Of a DNA stretch of 64,000 bases, positions 1,631 to 37,303 are shown one piece after another. The DNA comes from Macrostomum hystrix. Its lineage: Eukaryota > Animalia > Platyhelminthes. The stretch is from assembly GCA_950097015.1 (NCBI GenBank), contig CATNEN010000010.1, positions 1,860,001-1,924,000 of the forward strand, in the 5' to 3' direction. The notes under the pieces are model-generated. The model saw only the letters and a program-made list of their open reading frames with translations. It was not told where the DNA came from and ran no database searches. Both the position numbers and the translations under genes were made by a program. How positions within the stretch are numbered: the stretch's first letter is position 1; each line of letters starts with the position of its first letter.

Positions 1631-2059
1631 AGAGTCGCAGAGAGAGAGACAGGTTCATTGCGACAGGTTGAATATTTTGGGAGATACAGAAAACTGTCAA
1701 ATGTGGGTGTTTGAAATACCCCGCATTGGTATTTATATTGTTGAGGACGGTGAAAAATCCCTTCAATAGGAAGTGACTCCATCTCAGATTTCAGCGGGTG
1801 CGACTGTAATTTGTAGGGCTTACAGGTCCCTGGCAGGCACGTATATTAGCTTGCTCTAAAGACTGGTTGATTTCAACAATGCCTTTGTGAGGCTTGAGTC
1901 AATTATAATGCGGATAATTGCACATGCTTGCACGAATTAGCCTAAAAGCTTCATAGTGCACTTTCTGATTGCCACTATCTGCACACCGCATCATGCCCTA
2001 CTACAAGTAGTGAGAACAGAAGACCATCAAGTGCTCTCAAAAGCGCGGCTGGACATCAT

Positions 2060-13513: not shown

Positions 13514-16154
13514 TCAGAAGGCGTGGATCTGGAGGCTGCCCCGCAGGCCGCCGCACTGCACCTCGTCGATGTAGAGCGTGTTGGCCTTGATCTGGATTTC
13601 CTCCTCCAGGTCCAGCTGTCGTCGGCAGAGGCCCTTCAAAGAGTCGCGGCTGGCTGCCAGGCGCTGCGACAGCGCCTCCACGGAGGTGTGGATGCCGCCG
13701 ACTTCCTCCACGAGCCTGCAGGGTGTGGATGAAATTGCCGCCGTCCTCTTAGATGTGCTATTTTTATAAATCTGTACAGATTTAGAATGCACATGCTTCT
13801 TCGCCTACTCGTGAGTAGAAATTCTGGCATAAAGTAGAATATTGCAGTACTGTTCAATAAATACTGAATTGTCTAACAACGCTATATCACAAGTACTAGC
13901 TAAATATACAGCACAGCTGAATGTAAAATACCATAACTGCTTTCTAAGACTGCTTCTAGCAATCATGAAGCTAGAACTCGGTTAGCAACCAGCTAACATG
14001 GACTCATTGGGCTGAACAGCGCCATAATTAATTCGAGTAAAATTTCTGTTACTAAGCTAAAAGGGCTTTTGTCGAGTTTTTATCGGACCTGATCCCTGTG
14101 AGGTCAAGTTTGAGACCTCGGCCTCTGCAGCCGCCGCCACCGCCGCTGCTGACTCTGCCGACATTTGAAATCAGATCTGCGGTTAGCTTCCCTACAGTAA
14201 ATGTCTCAATCGAAAGTTTTGAACCGGCTCAAGATTAAGCCGAGCCCTGAGCTATTCTATCTATAGATTCTATAGAGCCTCTCTTATTCGCCCTTCCTCA
14301 GCCACTTTGTCCGCCCTCTCCTCAGCCACTCTATCCGCCCTTTCCTCAGCCACTCTATCCGCCCTCTCCTCAGCCACTCTATCCGCCCTTTCCTCAGCCA
14401 CTTTGTCCGCCCTTTCCTCAGCCACTCTATCCGCCCTTTCCTCAGCCACTCTATCCGCCCTTTCCTCAGCCACTCTATCCGCCCTTTCCTCAGCCACTCT
14501 ATCCGCCCTTTCCTCAGCCACTTTGTCCGCCCTTTCACGAGCAAATTAATCCGCCGTTCCTCTGCTACTCTCTCAGCCTTAAATCTTCGAATGCTCTAAT
14601 TATTCCCGATCGGCCCCATCCCGAACCTGAACTGGGCTGGGTCGCGGCACTGCTCCACGTTTGGCCGGGCGCCGCGGACCTTCAGTCGTGTCTCCGCCAC
14701 CTTCAGCGGCTGCTCCTTCTCGGCGATGGCCGCCTCCAGCTTGTCGATGTTGACCTCCATGTCCTTGACCTCGACCAGCACGTGGGCCAAGTGCTCCTCC
14801 AGCTTGGCCTTGGAGTCCCGAGTCTCCCCGATGCGCCGCTTCAGGGCGATGTCCACGCAGGTCTTCTGCTTCTCCAGATCGTTGGCCACGGCCTGCAGGA
14901 TGCCGTCAATTATGGAGCACATGTGGGCGGAGTTCTGGCGCTGCTTCTCCGCCTCCAGGATGTTGCGGTTGCTGAACTCCTGCCACTCCTCGGGGCTCAC
15001 GGACCTTGAAATGCGAGGAGCAACAATTGCAGAACAACCAGGTTGGGGAGATCGGGCAGAGGAGACCAGGATGAAGAAAGAGATCAAGAAAGGGGATCGG
15101 GAAGGGGAGATTAGGAAGGGGGCATTGGGAAGGGGAAATTTGGAAGGGGATATTGGGAAAGGGGCAGTGGGAAGGGGACATTGGGAAGGGGAAGGGGAGA
15201 TCGGGCACGGGAGATCAGGCAGAGGAGGATCTGGAAGGAGAGTAGCTGGACAGGTAGTTGAGCAGTGGTACTGACTTGCTGTCAATGCCGACGGCGCAGG
15301 GCGACCTGCCTAGGCCGGCCGTGTTGCCCTTGAGAGCCACGCAATGCGAGTCCAGCTGCTCGGCCGCCCGCTTATCGGCGATATCCTTCTCCAGCTGATA
15401 CTTGGCCTTACGATTTAGACGCAGCTGCTCCTTGGCCTGCTCAAGGGTCTTCATCAGCAGCGCCTGGGCGCCTTGGTTCACCTCCACCTCCTTCAGGAGC
15501 TCCTTCTGGACGTCGTCGTGCACCAGATCGATGCCGATGCGGCCCTCACTGTGTTGAGAGATTTTGAGGTACAGTTTGTCAGGCCGCTTTTTTGTGACCC
15601 GCACAACGACCTCTACTAATGCCGTTAATATTACTAGTACAAATTCATTCCCTCACCGGTTAATAAGGCACTGCTGAGAGATGTGCAGCGGCTCTTGGTA
15701 GGACTCCAGCGCCTTCTCCACTCGGTTGATGAAGGCGCCCAGCCGGTCGATCTCGCCGCTTACTCCGGCCAGCTTCTCGTCAACCTCCTCGCGCCAGTAC
15801 TTCACATCGTTTAGGCGCTGACCTGCGATTGTACAGAATAAAAGAAGCATGACATTCGCATTGGTTTTTTTATACTCTGCAACCTGCTTTAAAGAATCAA
15901 GAAAAAAATACGTGTACGAAAATTAATAAATTTCTACTTCAAGTAGCACTCAAGTACCACTCACTCAGCTTCTTGTCCACGTCGGCCTGCGCGGCGGCGG
16001 TCTTCTTGGCCGTCTCCTCGATGATGCGATCAGACTCGGCCTTGAGCCGTTCGGCGGCGGCCCGCTCGAGTTCGGCGTTGCGGTACTTCTGGTTGTTGCT
16101 GAAAGTCCACTCCGGGTGGGTGTAACGCGGTGGCGGATTCACGACCTTGGCCAT
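13514..16154 (-). CDS. TEKT1: Tektin-1, 5 exons (16154-15965, 15822-15657, 15548-15276, 15004-14627, 13715-13514), 402 aa
   Basis: MAKVVNPPPRYTHPEW start, REGRIGIDLVHD and RPNVEQCRD tektin motifs. All junctions are GT-AG with consistent phases (1,2,2,2); total 1209 nt. Confidence 0.95.
14285..14540. repeat. 24-bp tandem repeat (CTCAGCCACTCTATCCGCCCTTTC) in tektin intron 4
   Basis: About 10 copies read directly. Confidence 0.92.
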
Positions 16155-18669
16155 TTGCGAGCTGCTCAGCGGGAAAAGCGCTGAAGTAGAGTAGTTGGAA
16201 AGTAGTTTTAACCTAAAACTAGAAAATTGCATTGCTTCATCGGATTAATGTATGTACGAGCCGTATGAAAAAAATAAAAAACGGTTCCTACTTATGAACT
16301 AAAAATTTTTTTTAAAGTAAAAAATCAAAGAAAAAAATAACATGAAATATCATAAATTATCATGAAATAATTGTCTGATTAAATACACATTGTGAGTCTA
16401 GTCAACCACAATAGGAAGTTGACTAGACTACTAGTGCAATTGTAAAAAATGAAGCACCTATATGTTTCAAATAGAAAAATACTTTCGATTATTAAAAAGC
16501 GTACAAACTTATAATTCAATGAACAGTTTATCAGATATCCTCCACCATAATAATTAAAATCCTTCACATCTGAATTCAGTTAGAGCCAGTTATACACATT
16601 TGGAGTATGAAACATAAACAATAAAAAACTCATTTAACGAAAACCAAGTGAGCATTTCTGATGCGTCAAAAGGTCAATACACTCAAAAGGCAACTAGCTG
16701 AGAAGCTTCAGATAAGTATAGTTAAATGCAGCTGTATATATATTAAAATACAGCTGCGAGCTGCATAAATAAAGTCTTACTTTAAAATATTTTTGTAGCA
16801 ATTAAAATTTTTTTATTTCTACTTGCGCTCGAAATTTCTGTTTTTATGAAACGGTTGTCATTAAACACATTTTTTATTCATAATAACAAGTTGCAAATGA
16901 TAAGATTCAAAGCTATATATTTAAAAAGTTTGAATTTTCTTATATAATCATTCCTTATTTCCAACAATATTTTTGTCGACATCGTCAAAAATAAGGGGAT
17001 GTCTTAATATCTAATAAATCTATATAGACATATTAGATTGAATTACAGAAGCTATAAAATCATTATTGCTATGTCACAATACTGTAAGGAAGGACAAGTC
17101 CTGAAATGAGATAATTTAGGGCGACATAAACCGATGCGTTGTCACTGTTGAACACTTGGCAAAAGCCTTAGAAACACAAAAGCAAGTTTAAAGAAGAACA
17201 GCTACTATAAATGTATTAACTTGTTTTTATATAGTCGTTTATTATTGTAGTACTTCTAAAAGTTTTATACGAATAAATACTAAGGATAATATGTTTTGTT
17301 TAAATAAGCATACTTTACCGTATACGTAACTCTGTAATCACATTTTAGCAACACATTGCTCACACGTCTAGGCTGTCTAGGCTTTTCGAATGAAAATTTT
17401 GATCTAAGCTCGTATCTCAGCCGTGTAAATTTATCCTTACGTTTGAACTTAAGGATACACAAGCTACACACGCAAGAAAAGGTCCAATATTGTGTTTATA
17501 AAATCTTTTGGCACGTACGATGACTACTTCACCACACACTTTCTATGTATTCTTAAGTTGTCCTCGTGTTGGCGCTTGTACGTATATTCGATCTCATTTT
17601 TTTGTTTTACCAATGCATTTTTGTTTGCCTATATATTATATATTTTTTACTATTTTGCTTCTCTATTAAGCATACAGGAATAAAAAGGATTGAGATCTCG
17701 ATCGCACATTCAATCATTTCTCGTTCGCTACGATGCGCAAAAATTGCTTCAGTTTTTAGTAAATAGTCAGCAAAATCATAATAATTTAGCCATTACAAAC
17801 CTCATTTGGTTTAAGATGTTTTCTGTGATCCTGTTGGAGAATGAATAGTATGTAAAATATATACTGGTGCTCTTAAAGCTATAATTAAGATCATGGTCCA
17901 TTCGAAAAATCAGGGAATCTAATAAAGTTCTTTTGCACATTATTACTATATGGTCAAAATATTAATGCGTGTCGATCCAACCATTAACAATCAATCAAAG
18001 TTAAAAAGGCTCTATATCTACAAGGCTTGACCAATGGCAAATAAAACGTGCACTCCCCTCTCCCAACCTCTTCAGTTCCCTCGTACCCCTCTGTTCTTCG
18101 AGGCTGCACCCTACCAATGAAGCTGAAAACCTCACAGCAAAGCCTATATATTGCCCTTCAAAGGCTTGGCTGACGAGAACCTTTATTGTCGAAAGTTGCT
18201 TGTGGTCTACTTTCTTCTATAGGTAGACCAAGGAGAAAGGCAGCTGTGACTGACGCAGGGTAAGATCGTCCTGAAACTGACGCAACAGAAGATGGCGGCC
18301 ATGAAGCATCGCAGAGGAAATTCTCTGGTGGCCCCACTGTGCCTCTTGTTTCTTGGTAAGCGAAGTCATTGCGTAACAGAGGTTGTAAGGATTGAGACTT
18401 CGTGCACTTAATATTTAATTTTTTCCAGGAATAGCACTGATTTGCTGCTTTGCTGAAGCTGCGGAGAGCCATGGCGTGGCGGAGAACACAGACTCGCTCG
18501 TGAGTTGAGATTTCATTGCTGCTAGATTTAGAACTGAAACGAGCACTTTTGTTTTTCGATTGTTCAAATTTACGATCTGCCGTACTTGACAGATTGATTA
18601 AATACATGAAAAAAGCATCTATGAATGAGGGATGGTCATGTGCTCGTGTCGGGGATTCTGAATCCTAAT

Positions 18670-18925
18670 CTTAATCCTGATGTCGGATGTCTGAATCTTT
18701 ATGTCAGGATGTCAGCATCCTGATGTCGGATGTCTGAATCTTAATGTCAGGATGTCAGCATCCTGATGTCTGATGTCTGTATCCTGATGTCGGATGTCTG
18801 TGTCATACTGTCAGGATGTCTTTATCCTGCTGTCTGGATGTCTTTGTCCTGCTGTCTGGATGTCTTTATCCTGCTGTCAGGATGTCTTTATCCTGATGTC
18901 TGGATGTTTTTATCCTGATGTCAGA
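18670..18925. repeat. Degenerate tandem repeat (ATCCTGATGTC(G/T/A)GGATGTC-type)
   Basis: Repeated CCTGATGTC/GGATGTC units of variable length. Confidence 0.75.
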
Positions 18926-19987
18926 TCCTGTCTTGTTTCGGGAATGATGCATGTTTACATAAGACTACAGATACTATATTTACTAAACATAGTATCTGTG
19001 CATAAGACCGGTTAGTCAACTTTTTTCTTAACTTTCAAAGCCGATAAAGTTTCCTTAAACTGAGTGCACTTATCAGCGGAATCTGTAAAAAAGTACCATA
19101 GGACAGCCTAGTTTCTCATTGATTTCGCTTCCAGCTGACATATTCGAACGCTTTAAATATTTGTTTGAAATTGCGGTAAAAAGCCTCATATGCGGCAAGC
19201 TTGTTCTCCTAAACTAAAGCAGTGCTGCCCTAAGTCGCCTCTGACGTCAGCAGGAAGACAGACAAACAGAGGGCGGGTTGTTGCGTCGGCCTGCACGGAA
19301 TTTGCCGGCCCAGTCGGTTGCGTTGCTGCCGCGAGAGCTCTGTGAAAACGGCCCTCCCATTAGGTGCAGAGGAGAAGCTGCAGGAAGTCGGTAGAAGATT
19401 GGGTGAAGGATGGACGCTCAGAAAGCTGAGGCTCCGTGCGTGTTCGCACTCGAAAAGTGCGCCCTAATCACTGGGCTGACATAGCCCGCTTCCCCTTAGA
19501 TTTCCCCTACCTGCGCATGGACATGGCACAATGCGCACGAACCTTCTATCCCCTGCTCGCGAATCGATGCCTCCTTGAAATGACGCTACCGGGACGGAAC
19601 CATTTGGAACCAGCTGTTGGTCAGTTCACCACATTTCCTCTTATTAGCACCACCAGAGATATGATAGAAAAAAAATGTTAACGCAATCAAATTAAATCTT
19701 ATGGGTGTTCGTCTCAAGTCACAAAGTTACCCAAATTTGATGTTTTTGATGTTCCTCCGGCATTTTATTGGACTTTTCCAATGCAAATCCACGCGTACAA
19801 TCAAATGATTACTTGCAGAGAAAAAGAAGAAAAATATCAAACCAATAATTTTCAAATAACGATTGAATTGTCTCTGTGTCCCACATAATTTGCTCCAATT
19901 GGAAAAAATCGACAGAAAATTTTTTTGCGATCGACCAATCAGCACTCAGCTAGTCATTTAAGATCTAACCCACCTTACTCCACACAG

Positions 19988-22900
19988 GCTTCGTCAACCG
20001 GCGGGCGGCGCCGCCTACTACAGGAGGCCGAGGAGGAGGAGGAAGAAGAGACGGAGGAGGAGGAGGAGGATGCTCCTGCCGAGGCTTCCGAAGATGAGGC
20101 GGACGATGAAGCTGGGGCTGCTGACGATGCGGCAGGTAAAAAATCTGATTTGGCCATTAGGTACAAACGTGTCGGTTTATTGTTGTGTAGATCAAAGTTC
20201 TCCCCCACGAGACTTATTGCACAAATTATTTTCATTCATCGCCATTGTCATCCACTAGCTGATCGCACTAACTTGCGCGTTTACTAAAGCGTTTAACTTC
20301 TGTTCCTTAATCAGTTTTGTTTATTTAGTCCTGTGCACCGGAGTTCAGATGAAAACACAAAAAACACTTTAGGCTTTAAAATCATTTGGCTTAAGAATGT
20401 GAATGGAGAAAACATAAATGTGAATTATCACCGGCTAAAAGTACTAAAGGATGTAAAAATATAGTACAATTCTGCAAATATGACCTACTATTGGCCTTGA
20501 AATTCAATCTTGTCAGGATACATTCAGCATCATTGCTTCTCTAGCCCTGTTAAAACAACTTACTTATTAAAGCGGCCAATTAGTAGTTTCAATCGTACCG
20601 AAGCGAAAGATCAATCGCGAATGTTAAGAACCACCCAGAACACTCCGTCACTCGCCAACTGTAAGACACCGCCACGTCCGACGAAGACTCTGACGATGCC
20701 GACGATGAGACTGGAAACGACGGTCGGAGACGAAGGCGCCGAAAGGGACGCGGCCGGCCACAGCCACCGACGATGCACGTCGAAAGCGAAGCGGCAGAGC
20801 AGCCGATGGTACTGAGTGAGGATCCTAACGATCACGACTGTGATGGAATTCCCGACGACCAGGACGAGGACATTGACAATGACGGTCTGCTTGACAGGAC
20901 TCAGGATTCCGACTGGGATGGCGAGACCAATCAAAATGACGACGATGACGATAATGATGGCATCCCGGATGTAGAAGATCCCGACGCTAACGGCGATGGC
21001 ATCCCAGACTGTCGAGAAGACACATCCGATAATCAGAACCGCCTGCGCTACAGGAACCGCAAGAAGGAGGGCGACGCAGACAACGATGGCATCCCGGATT
21101 ATCTGGACCTCGATGATGACGGAGACGGAATCCCGGATGTGCTGGAAGACTCGGATGGGGATGGTATACCGGATCTATTGGATACTAGCAAGTACGACGC
21201 GACTGGTGAGTGCTGGGAATCTTAGGAATATCATTTTTAAAACATTTAGTATAGGTTCAGCAATTCACAGTTAGAAAAATGGGAATATTTATCGAGTCAA
21301 ACAATTTTTTTTGTTTTTGCATCAGCTAGCGTGCCAGTTAAGTGATAGTTATCACAATGACACAGTTTTTTGTTTTAATTTTGATTCAGACGGACCCGAA
21401 GTTGAAGATTTGATCGCCGACCTCGAAGAGATGGGTTGGTACGATCGCGACTGCGACGGCATACCAGACTTTCTGGATCCGGATGATGACAACGACGGCT
21501 TCCTAGACAACAAGCAGGACAGCGACAATGACGGAATCCTTAACGAATGGGACGATGACGATGATAACGATGGCATTCCCGACTGGGAGGATGAAGATTC
21601 CAACGGCGATGGAAAGCCAGAGTGCGTCCTGCGTGACTCCGACGGCGACGGCATCCCAGATCATATCGACACAGACGACGATAATGATGGAATTCCCGAC
21701 CTAAAAGATCCGAACCACCCACTGTACAACTTCTTCAAGGACTCCGACGGAGATGGCATTCCGGACTCCATTGACAATGATGATGACAATGACGGAATTC
21801 CAGGTATCATTGTAGCGAATTATGAAAACCAAATACTAGAGCGTCAACGATTCACGCACACGGTTCATGAAGCCGGAAATTTCTAGTTCTTTAGCTAACC
21901 TCCCATTGCTATTTCCTCTCGGCACTTCCCAATCCGCTAGTCGAGTCAGCATTCGTTGGTATTCTCTGTGCCCGGGTTTCAAAACTGAACAAGGAATTAG
22001 AAGGGAGTGGGGCGGAGAAATGGTGGGGAGAAGTGCTGCATGGGAAGGTCAAAAAAACCTACAGAAGTAGCTGCTGGTCTAAGGAAAGTGAGTGAAATTT
22101 TTGGGGCAGTGTGGGGTAGCGGGAGCAGCAGAAAGCCATTGTGCACCCTCTGGCCTTCGATTCTATTCGAAAGGTCGCCTCTCCATCTGCCACCCCACTC
22201 CCTCTGCATTTGCTGGGGAAAGCCGGGGTCCATTTCCGGGGTCTGCTGGCATCGGACGCATCGATCGAAGATGCGTAAACTACCTTGTACATTCCCTGGT
22301 TCTGCCTAGCTTTCTATCGAATGCGAAGCCTTTGTCTCTTTGCCTTTGATTTTTTATTAAAATGCCATCCTTTCTACTTTCCACGATGTTAGTAGGCGTT
22401 CTGTTTCTTGAACCAGAATTTCCATAAATTCACAAATTTTGCAAACGCTTTATTCTAAAAAATAAATATATTGAACAGCTTCAAAATGATTATATTTTTG
22501 CCTCTCTGCAGATCATGTGGATGCTGACTCTGACGGTGACGGACAAGCCGATCTGTTCCCAGACAGAGATGGTGATGGCATTCCGGACAACATTGACGAC
22601 GACATGAACAACGACGGAATTCCGGACCACCTGCAGGATCACGACTGCGACGGAATCCCTGACATCATAGACCCAGACGATGATAACGATGGCTATCTGG
22701 ACAACAAGCAGGACAGCGATAATGATGGCGTTCTTAACGAATGGGACGACGACGATGATAACGACGGCATTCCAGACAAAGATGACGAAGACTCCAACGG
22801 CGATGGCATCATTGACTGTGTGCCACGAGACAGTGACGGTGATGGAGTTCCCGACCATCTGGACGATGACGATGACAACGATGGCGTGCCTGATCATCTG

Positions 22901-25900
22901 GACCCAGACTCAATGTCCTTCCTGCTGTACAAAAACTTGGACGCAGTGGATGCTTTGCCAGGTGAGATACTCACTCAGTTTTGGGAGCTCCTGTGCTTGA
23001 TAAGCGCTATTGCTATTAACGGAGAGAGAATGCGCGCGCTTTCGTAGTCTGTTCCGTAGATGTGTCGCAAACTTTGTCTCTGATATAGTCCACCCCTGTA
23101 GAATGTAGACTTTTACCGACGGCTTCCTCAAATGGCGTGTACTCTCTTAACCCTGATACCTGAGGTAAAAACTAATATTTTTAGTTATGAGCATTCTTTT
23201 CGAGAATTATTTGCAAGCAACTAGTTAAAAAAATCTTGCGCGATATTGGAGCCCTTTGTGTTCTCCGATTCTAGTTATAAACTTAGTTAAAACCAAGAGG
23301 ATTTTCATCCTAGATTCAAGCAATAGTCTGGTTCATTTTGCACTATATGCTTGACAAGATACTCTGCGCCATATCTAAACCGTAAAATGCTTTTTACGTA
23401 TACTACTGTCACCAACTTAACAGTAGCGTGTAGCTGCTTGTGCTATTTAGATCCCACTTTCTCGCTTTTCATTATTTTTACCCTTGAGCCTAAAGTCCAT
23501 CCCGGTTTACTCTGGAGGATAATGTGGGTATCATCCCATCAAGCAACCCTACTACGAGTAGATGAGTTGTAAACAACTTTTGTTTTAGTACAAGTTGTAA
23601 AAGTATTAGAACAAACTCTCGATGTACGCCTCTCCCAAACTCGCGCCTTCTGGTCCCATCTTTGCAGAGCACATGTTGATTAGGAAATTGCAGAAAAAAA
23701 TGAGCTACTACTCGTTGCGGTATCCGGAGGGACTGCCGCCTCCCGAGACCGGGGACTCAAGCGTGCTCAATGGTTGGTCTCCAGTCTCCGTTTCCCTCTG
23801 CATTCCTCTAAGTTGTGAATTTGTTTCTCATAGTCGATGGCTGATGCATATTCCTTTTAATTTTTTGATATCTCACTTTTTTGTTTTTCTTAATTTGTGT
23901 TTGGACTTCATACATAAAGCAGGAAAATGACTGGCTACATTTCGAAAGACAATCTTTCTTTTTTAAAGAAAGATTCGGTTTCACATTATGTTTGTTGAAA
24001 TGAGGGCATGATCGAGAAAAAAACGACTTCTAGGTTGCAGACTTGCAGGGCGTGAAATTCAGTTCAATTTTGCTTTGTGTCCGCTGACAGCGAAAACTAC
24101 TGATTTTTTTCCGATGGTGCTAAATTTAAAGAATAAGCTTATGTGGGCTAAGATGCTTGTGAAAGATTTTCAAGGTCAAGGTCAGGAGTCACGTGCTGCT
24201 TGAGAGCTTTTTTATAAAACTTTTCGCTTCATTTCAGCAGCTCGGGTCTGTTTACAGTTTATGCGTTCTAAACGATAATCGTTGCACTTTTGAGAGTCAG
24301 GGCGTGTGAAGCGAAAAGGGAGTTGAGATAGTTAATAAAACCGGGTGAAGGCTCAAATTTGCGGGGTTGGTGTTGTGTTAAGGCAAGATAAGGAGTGTGA
24401 AGTGTGCCACAAAGGGTGAGAAAATAAGGCTTGAGTGGTAAGAAATGGACCAATCAGAATACGGCTAGCGAGAGAGCCAGAAAGAGTTAGAACAGAAGGT
24501 GCCTGATGATGCATGCGAGCTAAGGGTGGGGTGTGAAGTGGACAGACACGAAGATTAAATTGCAGATGCGCAATAAAGAAACACGAGAAGGCCGCGATAG
24601 CTCGTAACCATAAATGTGAGCATAAAATATTTGCACCCTGTCCTTAGCTGCACTAGAGCTTAACTGTTGGCTTTCATGGTATTTATTCCCGAAGTTCGTC
24701 CTGAAAGGAAAGCTAGCTTTCTACAAGCAAAAGTACCCGCCTTCAAATGCTTTTTTCTGTTCAATCAGCGCATATACAATCTCATGCGTCTTGCAGTAGT
24801 TAGTCCGCTTGCTTTTATTTGTTTCATTTAGTTGCTTTCAACCGCCTGTCAGCATCATACCATGGGGGCTGTGTCCAATAAGTAGTGGGAATTTTCAACG
24901 TAGCTCATAATCGGATTTAGACACATTAAATTCCTATACGTTTTATGAAAGCGGATTTATGTATCTCTGTAATACTTAATTTTGCTATTATCTTCTGGCA
25001 TTCAAAAGTTATGAACAATTTAGTGCAGTTCCCCTGGGTACAACTTACAGAAACTTTAACAAGTAGTCATAGACAAGAAACATGACAACAAAACTATCAG
25101 TCGTAATCCCATTGAAGTTCATCTTAACGTCAACTCAAATGTCCTTTTCGTCAGGGATGGAGACCTTCTCCACGTAGTCGCCTTTGCAGCTGATGCACTT
25201 CTCCCAGCGATCGAGTGCGCAACGAATCAATTGCATAAGCGTATGCAATCGTGAATGGGAATCGCAAAAACAAGGATGCGCCGAACCTCTTCTTCAAGGC
25301 AGTGACGATTCGCGTAGACTTTGCCTCGAAGCAGCTCCTTCAGTCTCGGAAAAAGACAAAAGTCTGCTGGCGCCAAGTCAGGGGAGTAGGGTGGGTGAGG
25401 CAGGAGTTCAAACTTCATGCCCTGAATTGCCTCCACTGTCTTTGAAGCCGTGTGCGGTCGGGCATTGTCGTGGTGGAGAACTGAGGGCTTGATTCCACTG
25501 CGCCGTTTTTTGTGGATGTCAGCCTTGAGCTTCTTCAGAGACAAGATGTAGCGCTCCGCATTGACAGTTGTGTTTGGCTCTAGGAAATCGATTGTCAAGG
25601 GGAGCGTCTTCATCAAGCAGATCCAAAATGCGATCGTTAAGAGTCTTGGATGCGGGCATCCTTGGCCGACCAGATTTTGGCAATGCCGCCACATTGGTTC
25701 GACCGGCCTGAAACTCCTCAATCCACCGGTAAACTGTGCTTTTGCTTACTGCGTGTTGTCCATGAATGCGCTGCAGGTTGCTCACAATCTCGGACCCATT
25801 GTGTCCCATGCTCCACAGAGTGAAAATAGCATGGTGCTGTCCCTCTTTCGAGTGGATGTCGGACATGTTTGCACAATCGTCGGATGCTTCAAATGCGCAA

Positions 25901-28900
25901 GTTCACAAATGCTTGGCTGAGCTGGCTTGCATCTAAAGCTTGAGATTGCCTGGCTTTGGTGATGCTTGCATGAGCATAGTTCTCATGTTGAGCCCATAGA
26001 CATGCTCAAGCATTTCTGTAGGCATCATCGCGCAAACGTAATGCAGTACAAAGTACAAAGCAAGACTTTCTTTATTGAAAACCTTCAAAATGTCATATTC
26101 TGTAAGTCGTACCCTGGGGAACTGAACTAAATGGCTCATAACTTTTGAATGCCAGAAGATATTGGCAAAATAAAAAAATAATGCATAGATCGATAAATCC
26201 GCTTTCAAGAAAAGTTAACGAAATTAATGCATCTGAATCCAACTATGAGCTACGTTGAAAATTCCCACCACTTTTTGGACACCCCTCGTACATTGTTTGG
26301 ACAATAATTTTCATTTGCTGAGTTACAGGGACGTAAAACCGAGTGGGATCCTTCCATCTTTCTACGAGTAACGACCAAAAACGATTTAGCCAATCAGAAT
26401 TTAAAGGCCGATTTCTCGGGACTAACGTTAGAACTTGAGTACGAAGTAGGACGCAGGTCAAGCATGCCCTTAAATAGTTTAAAAACGATTGCGTCTGTTG
26501 AAAATCTATTTTTAAAGCTTTTTGAACCCAGCGAAATAAAAACTGCTGATAATGGTTAAGTCTGCTGTTATAATGATCTTCACCATCCCGCACCATTTCA
26601 GCCGTGTTCGTGTCAGGTAAAATCGAGTGGTTGAGCATATTTTCTATTTTTTTATATTTTTATTTCTATTAGTTTAGCCCAAAATTATTTACAAAAACTA
26701 AAATTATCACTTGCAGTAAATTTTATAGTTTCACCCTAGTTAACATGGACAGTGAGACCTGATGCTTTAACATAAAATATTTATCGTGAATTTCATTTAC
26801 TTTTTTATTTCACTAGCTGCTCAGTAAATTAATGGAATATAGGTGCACAGGACTGGTGTGTGCTCATGTCACCTGTCAGCAAGCTAGCTGAGCACATCAA
26901 TTAATAAGCAGTTCCCCTATTATTTTATTCCTTGACTTATTTACAGTACTAACCAGTTTTTAATTTGACTACTCTCGGCTACCATGTCGATTGTTTACAT
27001 AAAACTAGTTTCTCCTTTCCAAAGCAAATAATAGAATATAATTTTTTGTTTAAATGGGAACAATGCTATTTTTTAGAGCATTTGAAGGAACTTTCAGAAA
27101 TGATTGGTGCTAGACACAACTGCATTGCATAACCATTAGAATGCTAAACGACCCCACCCCAATGCGTTGCTGTCTGTTGGGCCTTTCATTTACAACTGAC
27201 AGGATTTAAAATACGAAAGGAGGTTGAAATGCAAGTCTAGAAAGTCAGCTATTTAACTCTTACCTCATGCTAAACTGGCGTCTGATTCGAGTTCAATGTC
27301 TTACCTGCGAATGATGACAAGGGACAATAATAACATTTTCGTACAAAAATGAGCGCTCTTACAAAAATATATTTTTCACCTGGTGATTTACTTATCCAAC
27401 TTTTTCACGTAGGAGAAAAAAACTTAGAGACTCGATCCCACAGCGCACCTTGAAACTTTCTCAAATCCCGCAGCTGACGAAGCGCGCGCCAACGCCAACA
27501 ACGAGGCGAACCTCGGTGACCCCGGTGATAGGGACTGCGATGGCATCCCAGACGAGGAGGACGAGGATAATGACAACGATGGCAAGCTGGACCGAACACA
27601 AGACTCCGACTGGGACGGCCAGCTGAACCACGTCGACGAGGATGATGACAACGATGGTTAGTTGTTGTCGTGTGCTGTGTGACTATGAGCCATTGTCATG
27701 TGCTGTGTGACTATGAGTTAATGTTGTGTGCTGGGTGACTATGAGCCATTGTCGTGTGCTATGTGACTATGAGCCATTGTCGTGTGCTATGTGACTATGA
27801 GCCATTGTCGTGTGCTATGTGACTATGAGCCATTGTCGTGCGCTGTGTGACTATGAGCCATTGTCGTGCGCTGTGTGACTATGAGCCATTGTCGTGCGCT
27901 GTGTGACTATTGGTTTATGGTTTTCTGGTATTAAAGTTTGCACGCCATCTCGCAGGAATCCCTGACGAGCGTGATCCTGACGCCAACGGTGACGGTGTGC
28001 CAGACTGCCGACGGGACGAGTCGATCCTGTACAAGGTGGTCCGTTCCGGCAAGGGCAAGGTCAAGAAGGTGCTGATCTCGCGCAAGGAGACTGAGGAGGA
28101 GCAGGAGCTCATCGAGGCCAAGAAGTCCCAGGTGGCAGCGCACGAGATACACAAGAAGGGCCTCGGCAACCGCATCAAAGACCCGATGATGCACACCAAG
28201 ATTAAGTTGAACAAGAAGAAGCCCGAGGAGGCTGCGGCTGAAGCTCCAGTTGAGACGCACACTAAAGGAGCGGATAAGAAGAAGAATGCAGCCTCAACTG
28301 AGACCAAAAAAGCCGACGTGAAGAGCAAGCAGCCAGAGAAAAAGGAGACCAAGAAGAATGCAAAGAAAGACGAGAGAAAAGCACCTGTCGCGCCGAAGAA
28401 GCCAACGGTCAACTCGCCTCCAGCGGCCAAACCGACAGTCAAGAAGACGACGCCACCACCTGCGCCCCCGCCGCCGACACCGAAGACTGTCAAGCCGACA
28501 ACGAAGAAGCCAGAGGCGCCGGCGTCAAAGAAAACTGCTCCAGCAACCCCTCCTCCAGCAGCGGCCAAGAAGCCCGCTGCTGCTAAAAAGGCGCCACCGC
28601 CACCGCCACCGCCAGCACCAGCTACGAAGAAGACAGCCAAACCAGCGAAAGCAGCGCCGCCACCGCCGCCACCACCGCCGCCGCCACCGCCGCCTGCCGC
28701 AAAGAAAACGGCAGCAAAGGAAGCCAAGAAGCCGACGGTTGCGCCACCTAAAAAGGTGGCCCCAGCAAAGCCCGCCGCAAAGCAAGAAAAGGTCGAGAAG
28801 AAGCCGCAGACCCGAAAGCTCAAATCACTGGCCGATGATCACGACTGCGATGGAGTGCCAGATGATATCGATGTCGACATTGACAATGACGGCTATATCG

Positions 28901-31900
28901 ACCGCACTCAAGATAGCGACATGGACGGTGTGATGAATCACGTGGACGAGGACGATGACAATGACGGTATCCCGGACTCGGAGGATCCCGATAGAAATGG
29001 AGACGGTATTCCGGACTGCAGGTCTGAGTTTAAGCAGATCCAGGACACCGTGACGAGGATGCGCGGCCAGCCAGCTCAAGGCGAGAGCGTCGGCGCCATC
29101 AGAGAGTCCCGCAGCAGCGGCGGTGGCGTTAGCGGCGGCGGAAGCTGGTTCGGTGTCGAGGCTGCGGACGACAAAGCAATTAGGGAGGCTCAGAAGCAGA
29201 AGAAAAAGCTAATAAAGGAGGCAGAGGCCCCTGCGGCCAAGCCCAGTGGCAAGACAGTCAAGAAGACGTCTCCACCTCCACCCCCGCCACCACCCAAGGC
29301 CACCAAAAAGCCTGTTGCTGCTGAGGCTACCCCTGACTCCGATGGTGACGGCATCCCGGACCACCTTGAAGGTGATAGCGACGGGGATGGAATCCCCGAT
29401 TATTTGGAGGACGAGGACGGCGACGGCATCCCCGGTATGATTTCTAATGAGTGCGGTGCTTTTACTTTGCTTTCAGCTCGCAACGAAATTGAAATTGATC
29501 TGCCTGCTTTTTTGCCATGGCTACCTCTAGATCGCACAGTAGACTTCCTTCCTTTAGATCTTGCTCATTCCCAAACCTTGTAGCTCATTGTGACGAAAAT
29601 ATTTTGTTACCAAGCAAATCCGCATTCAACTGGAAATATTTTGAGAAACTTTTTAGCGACAGCCAGCTACTCAGTATCCCGTCCCCTGGCCCATGGGATT
29701 CGGGTGGTGGGAACGAAAATTCTCGACTTCCGCCGCTGATGTCAAATTGTTCATTAGACCACCTGGAGGGCGATAGCGACGGTGACGGTGTGCCGGATTA
29801 CTTGGAGGACGATGATGGCGACGGAATACCGAGTGAGTTCGGGCTGGATGTTGGGCGTATTTTCTGATCACAGCGGCTGCATTTTTCTAACTGGAAATGA
29901 CAAAAAATATTCGATTTCTCTGAAATTTGAAGACTATCTCGAAGGCGACTCAGATGGTGACGGAATCCCGGATTATCTAGAAAAGGACTCCGATGGAGAT
30001 GGCATCCCAGATCATCTGGACAAAGACTCTGACGGCGATGGCATTCCTGATCATCTACAAAAGGACTCCGATGGAGATGGCATCCCAGATCATCTGGACA
30101 AAGACTCTGACGGCGATGGCATTCCTGATCATCTACAAAAGGACTCCGATGGAGATGGCATCCCAGATCATCTGGACAAAGACTCTGACGGCGATGGCAT
30201 TCCTGATCATCTACAAAAGGACTCCGATGGAGATGGCATCCCAGATCATCTGGACAAAGACTCTGACGGCGATGGCATTCCTGATCATCTTGAAGATTCC
30301 GACGGTGATGGAATCCCAGATCATCTGGACAAAGACTCTGACGGCGATGGCATTCCTGATCATCTTGAAGATTCCGACGGGGATGAAATCCCAGATCATC
30401 TGGACAAAGACTCTGACGGCGATGGCATTCCTGATCATCTTGAAGATTCCGACGGGGATGGAATCCCAGATCATCTGGACAAAGACTCTGACGGCGATGG
30501 CATTCCTGATCATCTAGAAAAGGACTCTGACGGAGATGGCATTCCTGATCATCTTGAAGATTCCGACGGTGATGGAATCCCAGATCATCTGGACAAAGAC
30601 TCCGACGGAGATGGCATTCCTGATCATCTTGAAGATTCCGACGGGGATGGAATCCCAGATCATCTGGACAAAGACTCCGACGGAGATGGAATCCCCGATA
30701 ATTTAGAGGACGATGACGGAGATGGAATTCCAGGTAGCAAGCTGCAATCTGAGGAATTCTATGCATACGAGTATATATATGCTCTTAGCATTGATTTCAA
30801 GCCATTCTAGGAGCAAAAAGTGTTCTAATCCTTCGAACCCACCGCCTATAGACCATCTTGAAGGCGACTCAGATGGTGATGGCATTCCTGACTACCTCGA
30901 AGATGACGATGGTGACGGCGTCCCGAGTGAGTCGGGCGTTGAGTCGGGCGTCGCTAGGGATTGGGGAGATCATTGGCTTGTTGGAACGGACCTGGCCTTG
31001 ACCTTCAGCAAGACAACCTTTCCTATGAGTTCTAGTAATTTGCCAGCACCAATGGTTGCACGTATAACCACTGAGCTCTTCCAAACGCTCCACTCTTCTC
31101 GAAACCCGCAGCTGGTTGAGGGAAAACTGCTGCTGTCTGCTGGGTTGGCTCTGCGGCTGGCATGGTTACAATTAATGTTCTCTAGCACGAAACCTGCCAT
31201 ATAACATTGGTCCTTACTAATGAATGCAAAATACATTAATCACGGAAGATAAAAATGTGACTTTACTTCCTAACCTGCATTATTTGTGCCTATGGAAAAT
31301 TTTTTTTTCCTTTCTGTCACTATTCTTCTTGCGAAAATTGTTCATTTTTTGCGCTAATCGGGATGGAACCTTCGTTTCACCTGATAGCTTAGAGCTCTAT
31401 ATGAGCAGTTGTTTAGTCGAATTCAAATGCCCATTCTAGACTATCTCGAGGGCGACTCAGACGGTGACGGCATTCCGGACTACCTCGAGGACGAGGATGG
31501 CGATGGTATCCCCGGTAAGATCGAAGGAGCTTCAACTGGATCTATTTATATCCCATAGTCTAGAAGACAAAAGCAATGAAACCTGCATGCGTGACCCCCA
31601 GACTACCTGGAGCTGGACCTCGACGGAGACGGACAGCCGGATTATCTGAAGGACTCGGACGGAGACGGAATTCCAGGTATTGAAAGCTTCGCCCTCTTCG
31701 TTCCTCCACTGACTAGAAAAGGAAGTCCACAAAAAGCAGGAAAAATATGCAAAAAACTTGCTTTTTTCAGATCACAAGGACAAAGACACAGGTAGCATTT
31801 GTTTTGGGCGCACATACCTGCTTTCAGTCGCTGCCCATTATATTTAAAGTACCTGGACTAAAAAATGTGCTTAGATATCTGTATTGACGGGAATGATATT

Positions 31901-34600
31901 AACCAGTTTACTCAGCATTATCCAGCATTATCCAGCATTACCCAGCATTACCCAGCATTATCCAGCATTACCCAGCATTACCCAGCAATATCATCAGTGC
32001 AAGGAAGATTAGACTAGAAAGTGACACTCCTTCGATTTTGCCTGGCAACCAGGTCTCTCGCCGCCACCCACTTTGCGCATTTGCTTCTACGAATCGAATC
32101 CGATTTCCGCAGCTTTTTCCAAACTATAATAAAATTTATTTCGCTCAGTCATCTGAGTATCGCGCATGGAAAGTGTCCAGAATTGATTTTTCGTCGAGCT
32201 AAAAGCTGGGTTTAAGAATGCTTTACCAAAGTGTGAGACCTACCTCACTGGAGCACGCCAATGTATTTAGGTTCAGACAGGGGGCTCGGTGCACAATCAA
32301 CAAAAATAGCATGAAGCAACCAACCCCTAGACGGACAATTGCATGTGCACATTAAAGTACACGTGCACTAACAGGTGCGACTACAATTTTACTGTCCAAA
32401 GTTTTTCATCTCTCTCCTGCACGATTGGTGCTCCTTGTTGTCTGGTGGCGGAATCGGAATGCGACTCATTTCGTTCTCACTGAAAACTGCCACCGGTCAA
32501 ACAAGCCGGTCGTTCTTTATATAAAATTTCCCACTAACCGTCTCCCGTGCTAGACTTTGTTCCAAAGCCTCCCGCGGCTTCGGACCAGCAAACGAAGCAG
32601 TCAGCTAAGGCAAAGGCCAATACTGAAAAGAAGCCGGCGGACGGCAAGAAGCCAGCGGACGGCAAGAAGCCGGTGGACGGCAAGAAGCCGGCGGACGGCA
32701 AGAAGTCGGCGGACGGCAAGAAGCCGGCGGACGGCAAGAAGCCGGAAACGAAGAAGACTGCAAAGAAGGCGCAGGCTGACAGCGACAGCGATGGTATCGC
32801 TGACTACCTCGACCGCGACGCTGATGGCGACGGTGTTCCGGACGCTGTCGAGGATAACAATCAGGATGGTGTCTCCGACCTACTGCAAGCCAAGGACAGC
32901 GATGGCGATGGAATCCCGGATGCTGAGGACACCGACGATGACAACGATGGCGTCTCGGATGCCAAGGATTCTGATGACGATGGCGACAAGATCGTTGATA
33001 AGACCGAAGACGAGGACCAGGACGGTGTACCGGACTACCTTCAGCAGGAGGATACCGATGGTGATGGCATTATCGACGTCCTCGACACTGATGACGACAA
33101 TGATGGTGTGCCGGACTACTTGGATCAAGACGACGACGGTGACGGCATCCTCGACCAGTTCGAGGACGAGAACAAGAACGGTCGTGTTGATATCCTTGAA
33201 GCAAAGGACTCGGACGGTGATGGAAAGCAGGATTTCATCAACGACGACGACGATGACAACGACGGCGTGCCGGACTCCTCTGACACGGACGATGACGGGG
33301 ACAAGATTGAGGACCGGTTCGAGGACGAAAATAAAAATGGCGTGCCGGATCAGCTGGAGCGCGAGGACACCGACGGCGACGGCGTCATTGACCTCCTGGA
33401 CACTGACGATGATAATGACGGCATTCCGGACTACCTCGGTGAGGCCGAAAAAAGTCAACTGAGGCTACCGAATTTGGATTTTCCCAGCAGCACTGCTTTT
33501 AGTTGGCTTTCGATCGGCTTTCAGTTTCGACTTTGTGCGCCGAAACACGTAGAATAGTTCTTAATTGACTGCAGCACGTTCGATTCGCAATAGTTTCCTT
33601 AGCCTCCTAAGACCAGCGTTATGCTCGGCGATTCGCGCTTATAAACTTCACCCCAGTTTGAAGCACGTGAAAATTCTTACCCTTCACTTTTACTATATAT
33701 GCATGCGCAAGTTTTCAAGCCTCGAGAACGCCCTTTCCCCGCTTTTCTCTCTCTGCAGACCCCGACGATGATAACGACGGCATTCTGGACCAGTTTGAAG
33801 ATGAGAACACCAACCGCATCATCGACTTGCTAGAAGCTCGCGACACCGATGGCGATGGTGTGCCAGACATCAAAGACGACGACGACGATGGTGACGGTGT
33901 ATCGGACGAGGAGGACTCTGATGATGACAATGATGGTGAGCCGTTTATTTGAATCGGCTAATTTGTCGAATACTCGACTTGATTTCGTGGGCATGGGATT
34001 CTATCGCTGTTACGGACTGCGGATGTCAGTCCTCAGACAATTTTAGCTGGTGTTTGTCAGATGCTCTGCTTTTATTTATAAGATCACATTATAAACAATA
34101 CTCATTGTGCAGGCATCCCCGACGAATTGGAGGACGAGAACCGCAACCAGGTCCCCGACTACCTCGAGATGGAGGACACAGACAAGGACGGCCTCATCGA
34201 CCTCATCGACACTGACGACGACAACGATGGCATTCCAGATCAGGACGATGACGACGCTGACGGCGATGGCATCCCGAACGATGAGGAGGACGAAAACGGA
34301 AATGGCATACCAGACAATCAAGAACTCGTCGACTCAGATGGAGATGGCGTCCCGGATGTCGTTGATCAGGACGATGACGGAGACGGTGTGCCAGACGGCG
34401 TTGACGGCGACTCGCCCGCGGCAGGGGAGCACAAGTGCCGCAGTAAAGCGGACTGCGCCGCCAAGCAGGAGAAGCAGCCAAAGCAGGCGTCCAAGAAGGT
34501 CAGCAGCGGCGGCGGCGGTGGCAGCCGTGAGAAAGTTCGCCAAGTGCTCGACTGGATCGAGGACTTCTTCGGCGTTGACGATCATCAGCACCATCACTGA
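19988..34600 (+). CDS. Giant acidic DxDxDG (thrombospondin type-3-like, Ca2+-binding) repeat protein with Lys/Pro-rich blocks; 5'-incomplete model, >=15 exons, >=1,961 aa
   Basis: Exons 19988-20135, 20666-21205, 21390-21803, 22512-22961, 27474-27656, 27956-29434, 29758-29832, 29933-30733, 30852-30926, 31440-31514, 31602-31676, 31771-31791, 32554-33438, 33759-33935, 34113-34600 (TGA). All are bounded by AG/GT, all 14 introns are phase 1, and the sum is 5886 nt in frame. Dozens of DxDxDG(I/V)PD motifs; CACTAAC branch point at 32532. No start or signal exon was located. Confidence 0.85.
24860..26288 (-). mobile_element. Mariner (DD34D) DNA transposon, internally deleted and frameshifted, ~190-bp imperfect TIRs, TA flanks; inside an intron of the DxDxDG gene
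   Basis: HTH region ([17 protein letters not shown]...KSGRP), [19 protein letters not shown] with 34 residues between the two Asp, and C-terminal [15 protein letters not shown] in a shifted frame (~25165-25210). TIRs 24860-25052 and 26098-26288; TA at 24858 and 26289. Confidence 0.92.
27660..27910. repeat. 28-bp intronic tandem repeat (GTGACTATGAGCCATTGTCGTGTGCTAT)
   Basis: About 9 copies filling most of the intron between exons 27474-27656 and 27956-29434. Confidence 0.92.
31912..31988. repeat. 10-bp tandem repeat ((T/C)CCAGCATTA)
   Basis: About 7 copies. Confidence 0.85.
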
Positions 34601-35249
34601 TCCTTCATTGCGAATCGAATTTCGTCACCATCGGATTTCAAATAATTTCTGCACCGTATTTTAGGACCAATTTTTCACATCAGTAATTTCCCTGACAAGC
34701 ACTTTCCCGCATTCAGACATCTTTGCTTCCCTCACACTGCTGCTGTCCCCATTTCGTTCATTTGTTGAATCGCATCATTAGGACCGAATTGCGACAAAGT
34801 CAGCCATCTCCAACCCAGTCTGTTCAGCCTAATCTGTTAGCAGTGATGCTTAGTAAGCTTCCTGCTGTGTTGCTAAGGTACTTATGTGAACTTGCATTGC
34901 AGCTGTGAACCCATTAGTTTATCTTCTCAAATCTGTAATGCTCAGCCGTCAATTCAACCCAATAGGACTCCCTGCTGTTGCTACTACAGTACTATCTACG
35001 ATATTTTTAATTCTTTCTTGTTACGGTCGTGAAGCAAAAAATAAACTGATAACTTTCGACAGTAGTTAAATATACTTTAGTCATCACTTTCAGTCCCAAA
35101 TATGAAACATGAATTTCTGCTTTCGATCCCTGCCTGTTGGTACTTTAAACTCAGGAAATTGCAGGTATTAGCTGCTAGTCTAATAATGTACTATTAATAA
35201 TACAACTTCATTATTAAGTTCAGATGAAGCTACCATCGCCTTCAGTGTG

Positions 35250-35570
35250 AGACCTACAAACCCATACTGCCTTCCACAAACCCACACTGCCTTCCACAAA
35301 CCCACACTGCCTTCCACAAACCCACACTGCCTTCCACAAACCCACACTGCCTTCCACAAACCCACACTGCCTTCCACAAACCCACACTGCCTTCCACAAA
35401 CCCACACTGCCTTCCACAAACCCACACTGCCTTCCACAAACCCACACTGCCATTCCCAAACCCACACTGCCATTCACAAACCCACACTGCCTTCCACAAA
35501 CCCACACCACCATTCCCAAACCCACACTGCCATTCACAAACCCACACTGCCATTCACAAAGCCACACTGC
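35250..35570. repeat. 20-bp minisatellite (CTTCCACAAACCCACACTGC)
   Basis: About 16 copies. Confidence 0.95.
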
Positions 35571-37303
35571 TTTGACAAGCTCAGTAGTCAGAGGTCATCA
35601 AAGGCACTCAAGTAGGTCAGGCGTTTTTTATCAAACGTTTTGAAACGCAGCCAGTCGGGCTTCTTAGGAAACAGAGTTTCCTAGAAAAATGTATTTCAAA
35701 TTCAAACTCAAAGCACGGATGAGCCATGGATCAGCGGCTCTTGAAGACCTCACTGCGGCGGGAGCTAACACCGACTGCCCCAATGCCCCATCCACAATGC
35801 TCCGGAACAGGTACTCAGATCTGCTTCTAAAAGAAGTTGTTTGCCAGAGCTCCCTTTTGCGTTAAGAATGAATAGGAGATTTTCCGCGAAAAAATCATAA
35901 CTTTTCAGCCCTTTCTTAGAAAAAAATGCCCTATTTTATGTCCCCTGCTGACTCAGGTCCGCGTGTGAAGTGTTTGCTCACACACTTCTCAGTTATTTCA
36001 GGTGGAGTTTTGCCAGGTGTGCTCATGGAAGCGGATTAGGGCACTCTGAGCTGGCATCTGTCTCAATGTTTGGTGTCTATTATTTTTATCTAAGCCTACA
36101 AAATCATTGCCTAAACCTCAACCTGAACTTCAGCGCACTCCAAAATCTAACATAAAGCCTTCATCTCAACCTGAGAAGTAACTCTATGATCAGAATTCAT
36201 TCGAAAGTCAATCAGATTACAGCCATAAAATGGGCATCACAAGAGACTCAGTAAATTCTCTCACTTCCAGCCTTTTTGTCTATTTATTGTTAGATAGAAG
36301 TGAATAGTGAGAAGCAGTCAATGATGATTCAGCAATATTACATACGATAGCAGCAGTAGTAGGACACGTACAAGGACACGGGGCTTCTGTGCAGTGGTTG
36401 GCTGTGCTGGCTACACTGTGCAGTGCCTGATGCAGCATAGGGGTCTGTAGCCCCTACTCTAGCCTGCTAACCCACCCCACCAGGCATTGCAGCTGCACAG
36501 CACAGACCCGAAGTGAAGTGGTGAAAGGTGAGAGAGGCGCCAGACGAGGGTGCGAAGGAAGTGGAAAGTGAGACTGTATTGAAGCCGCATTTTATAATGG
36601 GCGCAGAATGCTATGCGTAAATATGGAATTCCAGCGGCCGCTCGTAATCACATGAAGCTGGAAAGGGAATGGGGGAACCGGAAGAAGGAGAGGGGAATAT
36701 GGTAGGTGAATAATCGAAGAGAAATAGGGGAGAGGATTATGGGCTAGTGGATAAAGGAGGGAATTTGATCAGGGGAATAGAGGGAATCAGGCAAGGGGAT
36801 AATATTGGAGATTTTTTGTGGCAGAGGAATAATTGCAGAGAAGCGAATAATTGCAATGAAGTATCGAGGAGAATAATAAGAGGAAGGGGATAAAAAAGAG
36901 GAAGCATGGGTTGTATTGGGGGCCAGGCGAAGAGGAAAGTCCATGAAAGGGGGGCAGAAATAGGGGACAGGTGCCGAAGTAGGAGCAAAGACTACCGACT
37001 CCCATCTGTCGGGGCATCAGGCGAAGAGACGAAGGTAGATGTGGAGAGAGATAGCCGTGATTCTTGGATGCGAAAGTACTGCAGAGCGCAAACAATAAGA
37101 GTCAGGGAGGACAAAAGCTGTACAATCTGATTGTGACCCGCGAGCACAGTTTAGAGCGGGAAAAGCAGGTGAGAAATACGAGCTGGGCACGGGACGGCCG
37201 CAGCCCAGGTTCAACGGGCGCGCGTGCAGGAGGTAGGAGACTCAGAATGCTGCTCAGACTCGGGCCGGAGAGGGACCAGGGCTCGATTCTCAAAGCGCCA
37301 AAG

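Follow-up and report, generated by a model that had tools for sequence, protein, structure and literature searches.

The plus strand of a 64,000-nucleotide stretch of DNA from Macrostomum hystrix (contig CATNEN010000010.1 of assembly GCA_950097015.1, positions 1,860,001 to 1,924,000, hereafter the window) carries one spliced, expressed gene that extends from position 18194 to position 34600 and comprises 16 exons. The encoded protein of 1,999 amino acids is soluble and built from calcium-binding loops of the thrombospondin type-3 kind with conserved Cys pairs, and the gene is, by sequence comparison, the orthologue of an uncharacterised gene that is conserved across flatworms. Concerning its role, a buffer in the lumen of a calcium store of the endoplasmic/sarcoplasmic reticulum (ER/SR) type, functionally linked to endoplasmin (GRP94), has about an even chance and is preferred over an exported matrix protein. 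Type-3 calcium-binding repeats as such are already known, while the giant domain-poor architecture tied to endoplasmin is new.

All 16 exons (Table 1) join in frame according to splice-site scoring and RNA contigs. Open stretches bearing DxDxDG motifs occur exclusively on the plus strand between 20665 and 34597, and none was found on the minus strand or elsewhere in the window. Fourteen exons were scored independently within 19988-34600, where the frame remains open up to the stop codon at 34598-34600; an AATAAA hexamer follows at 35040, about 440 nucleotides past the stop. The introns after E1 are all in phase 1 and split the Asp codon that follows "DGIP", and every junction restores DGIP/D. 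RNA contigs assembled from four runs over positions 17001-23000 contain the GT..AG joints 18355/18429, 18499/19988 (these first two seen in three to four runs), 20135/20666, 21205/21390 and 21803/22512, and RNA depth in the introns is zero. Contigs start at 18194, 18223 or 18260 within exon A. A loose contig end past 22961 continues as the sequence from 27474 and thus connects E4 with E5; on this RNA evidence, the acceptor 27444 considered for E5 was replaced by 27474. In run X6, a single contig of 3,418 nucleotides spans exon A to E4 and then proceeds for 1,658 nucleotides more, which is approximately the summed length of E5 and E6. Farther downstream, 31-mers of E12 are present at shares of 0.85-0.90 in RNA runs X5-X8, four small runs from one organism; runs from two further organisms contain them at lower shares. 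Contigs from runs X1 and X2, which stem from a second organism (A), match the region 17001-23000 at 90-95% with identical joints, and a related species therefore expresses an orthologue with the same 5' exon structure.

The initial annotation, made from the DNA alone, had started at the phase-0 acceptor at 19988 and left the 5' end missing. This end is now located in two upstream exons, A and B, which are present in RNA and encode a signal peptide. As the acceptor at 19988 is joined to exon B at 18499 in RNA, it is cis-spliced, and a start donated by a spliced leader at this position is ruled out. The same annotation had counted 15 in-frame exons from 19988 onwards. Fourteen of these indeed splice in frame to the C-terminus it gave, whereas the fifteenth is probably just a 21-nucleotide candidate at 31771-31791, because its inclusion turns the 1,954 residues encoded from 19988 into the 1,961 that had been reported. 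The candidate is flanked by the splice signals TTTTTTCAG and GTAGCA, has a strong acceptor and donor and is open in phase 1.

The product has a mass of 214.7 kDa, an Asp content of 25.1% and a pI of 4.05, and the DxDxDG motif occurs in it 101 times in its strict form. Among its 15 Cys are five pairs, each spaced by exactly 57 residues, that delimit five 58-residue modules. The N-terminus encoded by the RNA-derived 5' exons reads MAAMKHRRGNSLVAPLCLLFLGIALICCFAEA/AESHGVAENTDSL (mature start AESH) and combines a basic n-region, a hydrophobic core of 19 residues and an AxA site, while no second hydrophobic or transmembrane segment was found in the whole 1,999-residue product. Since RNA encodes this classical cleavable signal peptide, entry into the ER, and thereby into the secretory pathway, is supported. 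Past the signal peptide the N-terminal region is rich in Glu, Asp and Ala. The several subtypes of DxDxDG motif and the interleaved Lys/Pro/Ala-rich segments that had been described before reappear as the same motif families in our translations. At the DNA level, the repeat in E8 has a period of 39/75 nucleotides (Tandem Repeats Finder (TRF): period 75, 9.5 copies, 93% match). The last 70 residues comprise a Cys pair, a Lys-rich patch and a helix segment, and the chain ends with HQHHH.

The repeats were assigned with the help of Pfam, in which TSP_3 matches E8 with 99.4 bits (cut-off 25) in 12 stretches and other exons with 14-17 bits each; TSP3_bac reaches 69.7 bits on E8. Among solved structures the only match by sequence is COMP (E 5.5e-5, from E12), and a PDB profile search gave just one marginal match, BamM. 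An AlphaFold2 model of module 2, based on a 15-row alignment, has a predicted local distance difference test (pLDDT) score of 60.5 and consists mostly of coil with nearly no secondary structure. This is what would be expected for a calcium-dependent 'wire' modelled without its ions, and is weak evidence. When the model was submitted to Foldseek, the type-3 repeats of COMP, TSP-2 and TSP-1 ranked as the top three, again weakly (E around 2e-3). The earlier comparison with thrombospondin type-3 loops is thus borne out. EGF domains were found neither at E<=0.1 in the large exon-bearing open reading frames (ORFs), a scan of the exons other than E5, E7, E9-E11 and E13, nor at E<=0.01 in the homologues P0001 and P0154, and Pfam scans of the large exons and of these two homologues reported no TSP_C (PF05735), EF-hand or calsequestrin families. 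With EGF and TSP_C absent, the gene is not an animal thrombospondin, as had been held from the start.

Several other matches were dismissed as effects of motif or composition. Pfam Cementoin stays below its cut-off on the KKPADG array (22.1 bits). Binary_toxB (PF03495) collects a summed 33.2 bits, no single stretch passes, and the best one covers profile positions 2-14. A domain of clostridial binary toxin B or anthrax protective antigen is rejected, as the 78-position unit is unmatched, solely the DxDxDG loop is shared and no toxin domain is present. The ESM Atlas returned generic archaeal and bacterial TSP3 clusters and nothing closer. A HMMER search with E12 over 1.8 billion representatives gave zero matches, which we attribute to composition-bias filtering of the Asp-rich query and not to absence of homologues; word-indexed searches found many, and the null result is therefore no proof of absence.

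The protein had initially been regarded as unlike any family. This does not hold, because cestodes and trematodes possess clear orthologues, as the gastropod Lymnaea probably does; their annotations read 'thrombospondin', 'TSP3 repeat-containing' or, where models are fused, 'endoplasmin'. The family is uncharacterised, and full-text literature searches found no functional study of it. The flatworm type-3-repeat orthogroup comprises P0001, P0002, P0046 and P0152-P0157. E6 matches the Spirometra hypothetical protein AAHC03_05436 (E 6e-101) and a 'Thrombospondin' from Rodentolepis nana (E 9e-99), further homologues include a 'thrombospondin type 3 repeat-containing domain protein' of Opisthorchis viverrini, and homologous models of about 3,000 residues are present in Schistosoma, Opisthorchis, Clonorchis and four Paragonimus species. 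Residues 149-1994 of the product align with residues 1214-3256 of Paragonimus westermani P0154 in one colinear high-scoring segment pair (47.7% identity, 2,136 columns), which independently supports E2-E14 as parts of one gene, and P0155 likewise aligns colinearly. Identity amounts to 65-69% for E2 against the O. viverrini and Spirometra proteins and to 75-82% for module 2 against cestode and trematode proteins, with 59 invariant columns in alignment A1, Cys and Asp among the invariant module positions. The intron position between E5 and E6 recurs in Spirometra and Rodentolepis, the Spirometra gene likewise opens with two small signal-peptide exons, and the homologues from trematodes, cestodes and Lymnaea likewise have an RRLL motif at their start. 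At the other end, the window protein and the flukes have in common a motif VLxWIExxxGV at most ten residues from the terminus, in the fluke versions VLRWIESIVGV and VLRWIENVVGV (C-termini VLRWIESIVGVENSSG in P0154 and VLRWIENVVGVENSD in P0155). Outside the flatworms, type-3-like Asp repeats are borne by MFSD6-like transporters (PF12832) of culicine and anopheline mosquitoes (P0038, P0042, P0043, P0048); in short stretches, these repeats share 45-55% identity with the flatworm modules.

The relatives feature a gene arrangement that bears directly on function. Eleven gene models from nine trematode species (P0032, P0152-P0157, P0269, P0272, P0274, P0275) fuse endoplasmin with the orthologue of the window gene. 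These models, from Schistosoma, Clonorchis and Paragonimus among other genera, bear the names 'Endoplasmin', 'Endoplasmin, variant 2' or 'HSP90 beta'. A complete endoplasmin (HSP90 domain 617 bits) forms the first part of these models and of one from Lymnaea stagnalis, and the transition to type-3 repeats lies at a CxxCxRxL motif. All omit a tiny terminal endoplasmin exon for KDEL or RDEL that the DNA of O. viverrini, P. westermani and Lymnaea contains and that lies upstream of the repeat gene on the same strand (Table 1). The repeat gene begins with a phase-0 acceptor in O. viverrini and Lymnaea, in agreement with the donor of the penultimate endoplasmin exon, which is likewise in phase 0. 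In Lymnaea, O. viverrini and P. westermani alike, a crude scan of the gap separating endoplasmin from the RRLL exon yielded no convincing candidate for a private signal-peptide exon, which neither proves nor disproves fusion. The Lymnaea exon is a single open frame of 2,488 codons with 207 DxDxDG motifs, followed by a Cys pair, a Lys-rich patch and helices resembling those of the window protein, and is probably the counterpart of the window gene. It ends with KKTEL, a KDEL-type signal. KTEL is the ER-retention-type C-terminus of CDNF. The fused annotations may be predictor artefacts propagated between genomes. It is very unlikely that the same two genes are adjacent in flukes and a gastropod by chance, so that the arrangement points either at an ancient linkage with shared regulation or at a true alternative 3' end of endoplasmin.

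The structure and expression of the gene, its signal peptide, the type of its repeats and its orthology are directly supported, and we infer calcium binding, its stoichiometry and the compartment as follows. The soluble 1,999-residue protein enters the ER via its cleavable signal peptide. Its approximately 100 DxDxDG loops are organized as five disulphide-closed 58-residue modules with four loops each, an array of about 20 loop units of 13 residues and higher-order repeats towards the C-terminus; basic Lys/Pro/Ala spacers separate these blocks, and a conserved amphipathic helix forms the end. The chain would fold around calcium in the manner of the type-3 'wire' of thrombospondin and COMP. By analogy, each loop could take up about one to two Ca2+, corresponding to the order of 100-200 Ca2+ per molecule, and the protein would then act as a low-affinity calcium binder of very high capacity within the secretory pathway. 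Among the roles proposed at first (ER/SR store, mucus, adhesion release or mineralisation), a luminal store is favoured because of the linkage to endoplasmin and the KTEL end in Lymnaea.

A number of points weigh against this assignment. The window protein ends with HQHHH and its trematode orthologues with ENSSG and ENSD, none of them of the KDEL type [KRHQSA][DENQT]EL, and secretion would thus be the default fate. To our knowledge, the characterised eukaryotic proteins with type-3 repeats are all extracellular. Calcium binding by the window protein is a prediction, and confidence in the AlphaFold model is low (pLDDT 60). The Lymnaea exon is taken as an orthologue solely because of its repeat type and of short motifs at its termini. 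No HSP90 similarity exists anywhere in the window, and endoplasmin is found neither there nor within 10 kb upstream of the gene in two cestodes; the fused annotations, moreover, may copy one another.

It is possible, if rather less than probable, that the protein is exported and serves as a calcium-dependent polyanionic component of a matrix, mucus or adhesive, which would fold in millimolar extracellular Ca2+ and whose basic Lys/Pro spacers would bind anionic partners. The presence of a signal peptide together with the lack of a transmembrane segment and of a KDEL-type end agrees with such a fate, type-3 repeats, like loops closed by disulphides, typically occur in extracellular proteins, and the poly-Arg patch RRRRRRKGR could be a furin-type site, pointing at passage beyond the ER. 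This patch, however, lacks evident conservation in the cestode and trematode sequences compared, and the coupling to endoplasmin in trematodes and Lymnaea as well as the KTEL end of the latter indicate the ER. A different relation to endoplasmin is unlikely in our view, though by no means negligible: the trematode and Lymnaea orthologue may be an alternative 3' extension of endoplasmin, in which the KDEL/RDEL exon is skipped and the RRLL exon, with its phase-0 acceptor, is spliced to the penultimate endoplasmin exon, whose donor is in phase 0. This would yield a GRP94 chaperone with a calcium-binding tail of 2,000-2,500 residues, and the stand-alone window gene with its two signal-peptide exons would represent a fission form of this fused unit.

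It appears distinctly improbable that the protein serves mineral deposits inside cells, for instance the calcareous corpuscles known from cestodes and trematodes, as their organic matrix or calcium loader, with a part in nucleating or stabilising calcium carbonate or phosphate within a vacuole of the secretory pathway. The extreme Asp content resembles that of other biomineral proteins, and cestodes and trematodes that form corpuscles possess the family. A passage in PMC4987107 cites Rodrigues et al. [quoted passage not shown] Furthermore, the ordered, position-specific DxDxDG loops with their high identity between species (75-82%) are unlike the loose poly-Asp runs that mineral matrix proteins usually have. 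That the exons do not form one gene at all, and instead represent several neighbouring genes or repeat DNA mimicking exons, is extremely improbable. It is true that the Spirometra annotation divides the homologous region into two adjacent genes and that the junctions from E6 to E14 are based on splice sites and frame instead of RNA joints. However, RNA joints span exon A to E5 and E12 is transcribed in the same runs, the 13 downstream junctions are all in phase 1 and each rebuilds DGIP/D, and the alignment with the trematode proteins runs colinearly from E2 to the final five residues. The single gene proposed initially has therefore been upheld.

The molecular basis of calcium stores in invertebrates is poorly understood, and a conserved 215-kDa protein with about 100 ordered loops would rank among the calcium binders of highest capacity described. 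Praziquantel kills parasitic flatworms through Ca2+ derangement, which makes calcium handling in flatworms medically relevant. From the position of the gene behind endoplasmin in trematodes and a gastropod, bulk calcium storage can be linked, in a testable manner, to a major ER chaperone. Should the repeats indeed be an extension of endoplasmin, the protein would be a dedicated calcium partner of GRP94 in the ER lumen across Lophotrochozoa. Trematode databases list 'endoplasmin' entries of about 3,000 residues that need correction, if they are mis-fused, or confirmation, if they represent a remarkable isoform.

In the window, the repeat gene is arranged head to head with a tektin gene on the minus strand (13514-16232). 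The start codon region of the latter at 16232 lies about 2 kb from the start of the repeat-gene transcript (at or before 18194), and the two may share a promoter region. A multi-exon cytochrome P450 gene is located at 6218-8908 on the plus strand (Pfam p450 89.9 bits, last exon). Long tandem arrays at 1956-4656 (plus strand) and 35180-35615 (both strands) contain spurious repetitive ORFs and resemble satellite DNA on either side of the genes. Within the repeat gene, the 4.5-kb intron 4 harbours a remnant of a mariner/Tc1-like transposase on the minus strand (25227-25866; Pfam HTH_48, DDE_3 and Transposase_1) that does not code for part of the protein, and intron 5 is almost filled by a 28-nucleotide tandem array (27665-27910, 8.8 copies, 93% match).

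Table 1. Exons of the type-3-repeat gene (positions in the window) and endoplasmin terminal exons next to its relatives (positions in the respective loci).
Feature	Position	Strand	Content	Evidence or remark
Exon A	18194..18355	+	5' untranslated region from at least 18194, ATG at 18292, first 21 signal-peptide codons	
Exon B	18429..18499	+	Remaining signal peptide, predicted AEA/A cleavage site	Phase 0 end
E1	19988..20135	+	RRRLLQ motif, then Glu/Asp/Ala-rich acidic stretch	RNA joints on both sides
E2	20666..21205	+	Poly-Arg patch, Cys-bracketed module 1, more DxDxDG loops	Unbroken RNA contig
E3	21390..21803	+	Cys-bracketed module 2, four more loops	RNA joints
E4	22512..22961	+	Cys-bracketed module 3	RNA joint 21803/22512, loose end to 27474, alignment A1
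E5	27474..27656	+	Cys-bracketed module 4, first half	Sequence identical to loose end after 22961
E6	27956..29434	+	Module 4 second half, 270-residue Lys/Pro/Ala-rich spacer, module 5, second Lys/Pro spacer, first DSDGDGIPD units	Open frame, splice sites
E7	29758..29832	+	75-nucleotide cassette-like exon, phase 1-1, two loops	Splice sites, frame
E8	29933..30733	+	About 20 tandem 13-residue units ending (D/E/Q)K	
E9	30852..30926	+	75-nucleotide cassette-like exon	Splice sites, frame
E10	31440..31514	+	75-nucleotide cassette-like exon	Splice sites, frame
E11	31602..31676	+	75-nucleotide cassette-like exon	Splice sites, frame
Candidate microexon	31771..31791	+	21 nucleotides, DHKDKDT, phase 1-1	Outside the 1,999-residue model
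E12	32554..33438	+	KKPADG hexapeptide array, then higher-order Asp-loop repeats	TRF 18-nucleotide array
E13	33759..33935	+	Asp-loop repeats	Splice sites, frame; inside colinear P0154 alignment
E14	34113..34600	+	Final loops, Cys-x6-Cys pair, Lys-rich patch, conserved helix motif, His-rich tail, stop	C-terminal motif common to P. westermani and O. viverrini
O. viverrini L006, endoplasmin mini-exon	5623-5697		...AKDEL and stop	First repeat-gene exon 20 kb downstream, same strand
P. westermani L005, endoplasmin mini-exon	5751-5786		...AKDEL and stop	First repeat-gene exon 15 kb downstream, same strand
Lymnaea L004 (10001-43632), endoplasmin mini-exon	~32.6 kb		...SRDEL and stop	First repeat-gene exon 3.5 kb downstream, same strand

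Among known systems, the window protein resembles the type-3 'wire' of thrombospondin and COMP (PDB 1UX6, 1YO8, 3FBY, which head its sequence and Foldseek matches in the PDB), in which DxDxDG(x)xD loops with hardly any secondary structure are likewise closed by disulphides. In contrast to thrombospondin, however, it contains about 100 loops instead of 13, one Cys pair per 58-residue module in place of the Cys pattern of thrombospondin and long basic Lys/Pro/Ala spacers, and it is devoid of EGF repeats, of a TSP_C lectin-like domain and presumably of a coiled coil. With bacterial TSP3 surface proteins (PF18884; linked to OmpA or the type IX secretion system (T9SS)) it shares the 13-residue DSDGDGIPD unit, and it is 33-45% identical to long bacterial repeat proteins, whereas the gene itself is a spliced animal gene with animal orthologues and without OmpA, T9SS or Ig-like domains. 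Calsequestrin, the acidic tail of GRP94 and HRC are luminal Ca2+ buffers of low affinity and high capacity, which the window protein resembles in being acidic and soluble and in bearing a signal peptide. Calsequestrin also lacks KDEL, and GRP94 is the very protein to which the orthologue is genomically coupled in relatives. Unlike these buffers, the window protein is without a thioredoxin-like fold, Pfam gives no match to their families, and binding would make use of ordered type-3 loops and not of diffuse acidic surfaces. The flatworm orthogroup, finally, is colinear with the window protein from the RRLL exon via five Cys modules and loop arrays to VLxWIExxxGV. The trematode models differ in that an endoplasmin of 750-830 residues is placed in front, where the window gene has signal-peptide exons of its own that are proven by RNA, and the trematode proteins lack the Cys-x6-Cys pair and the His-rich end of the window protein.

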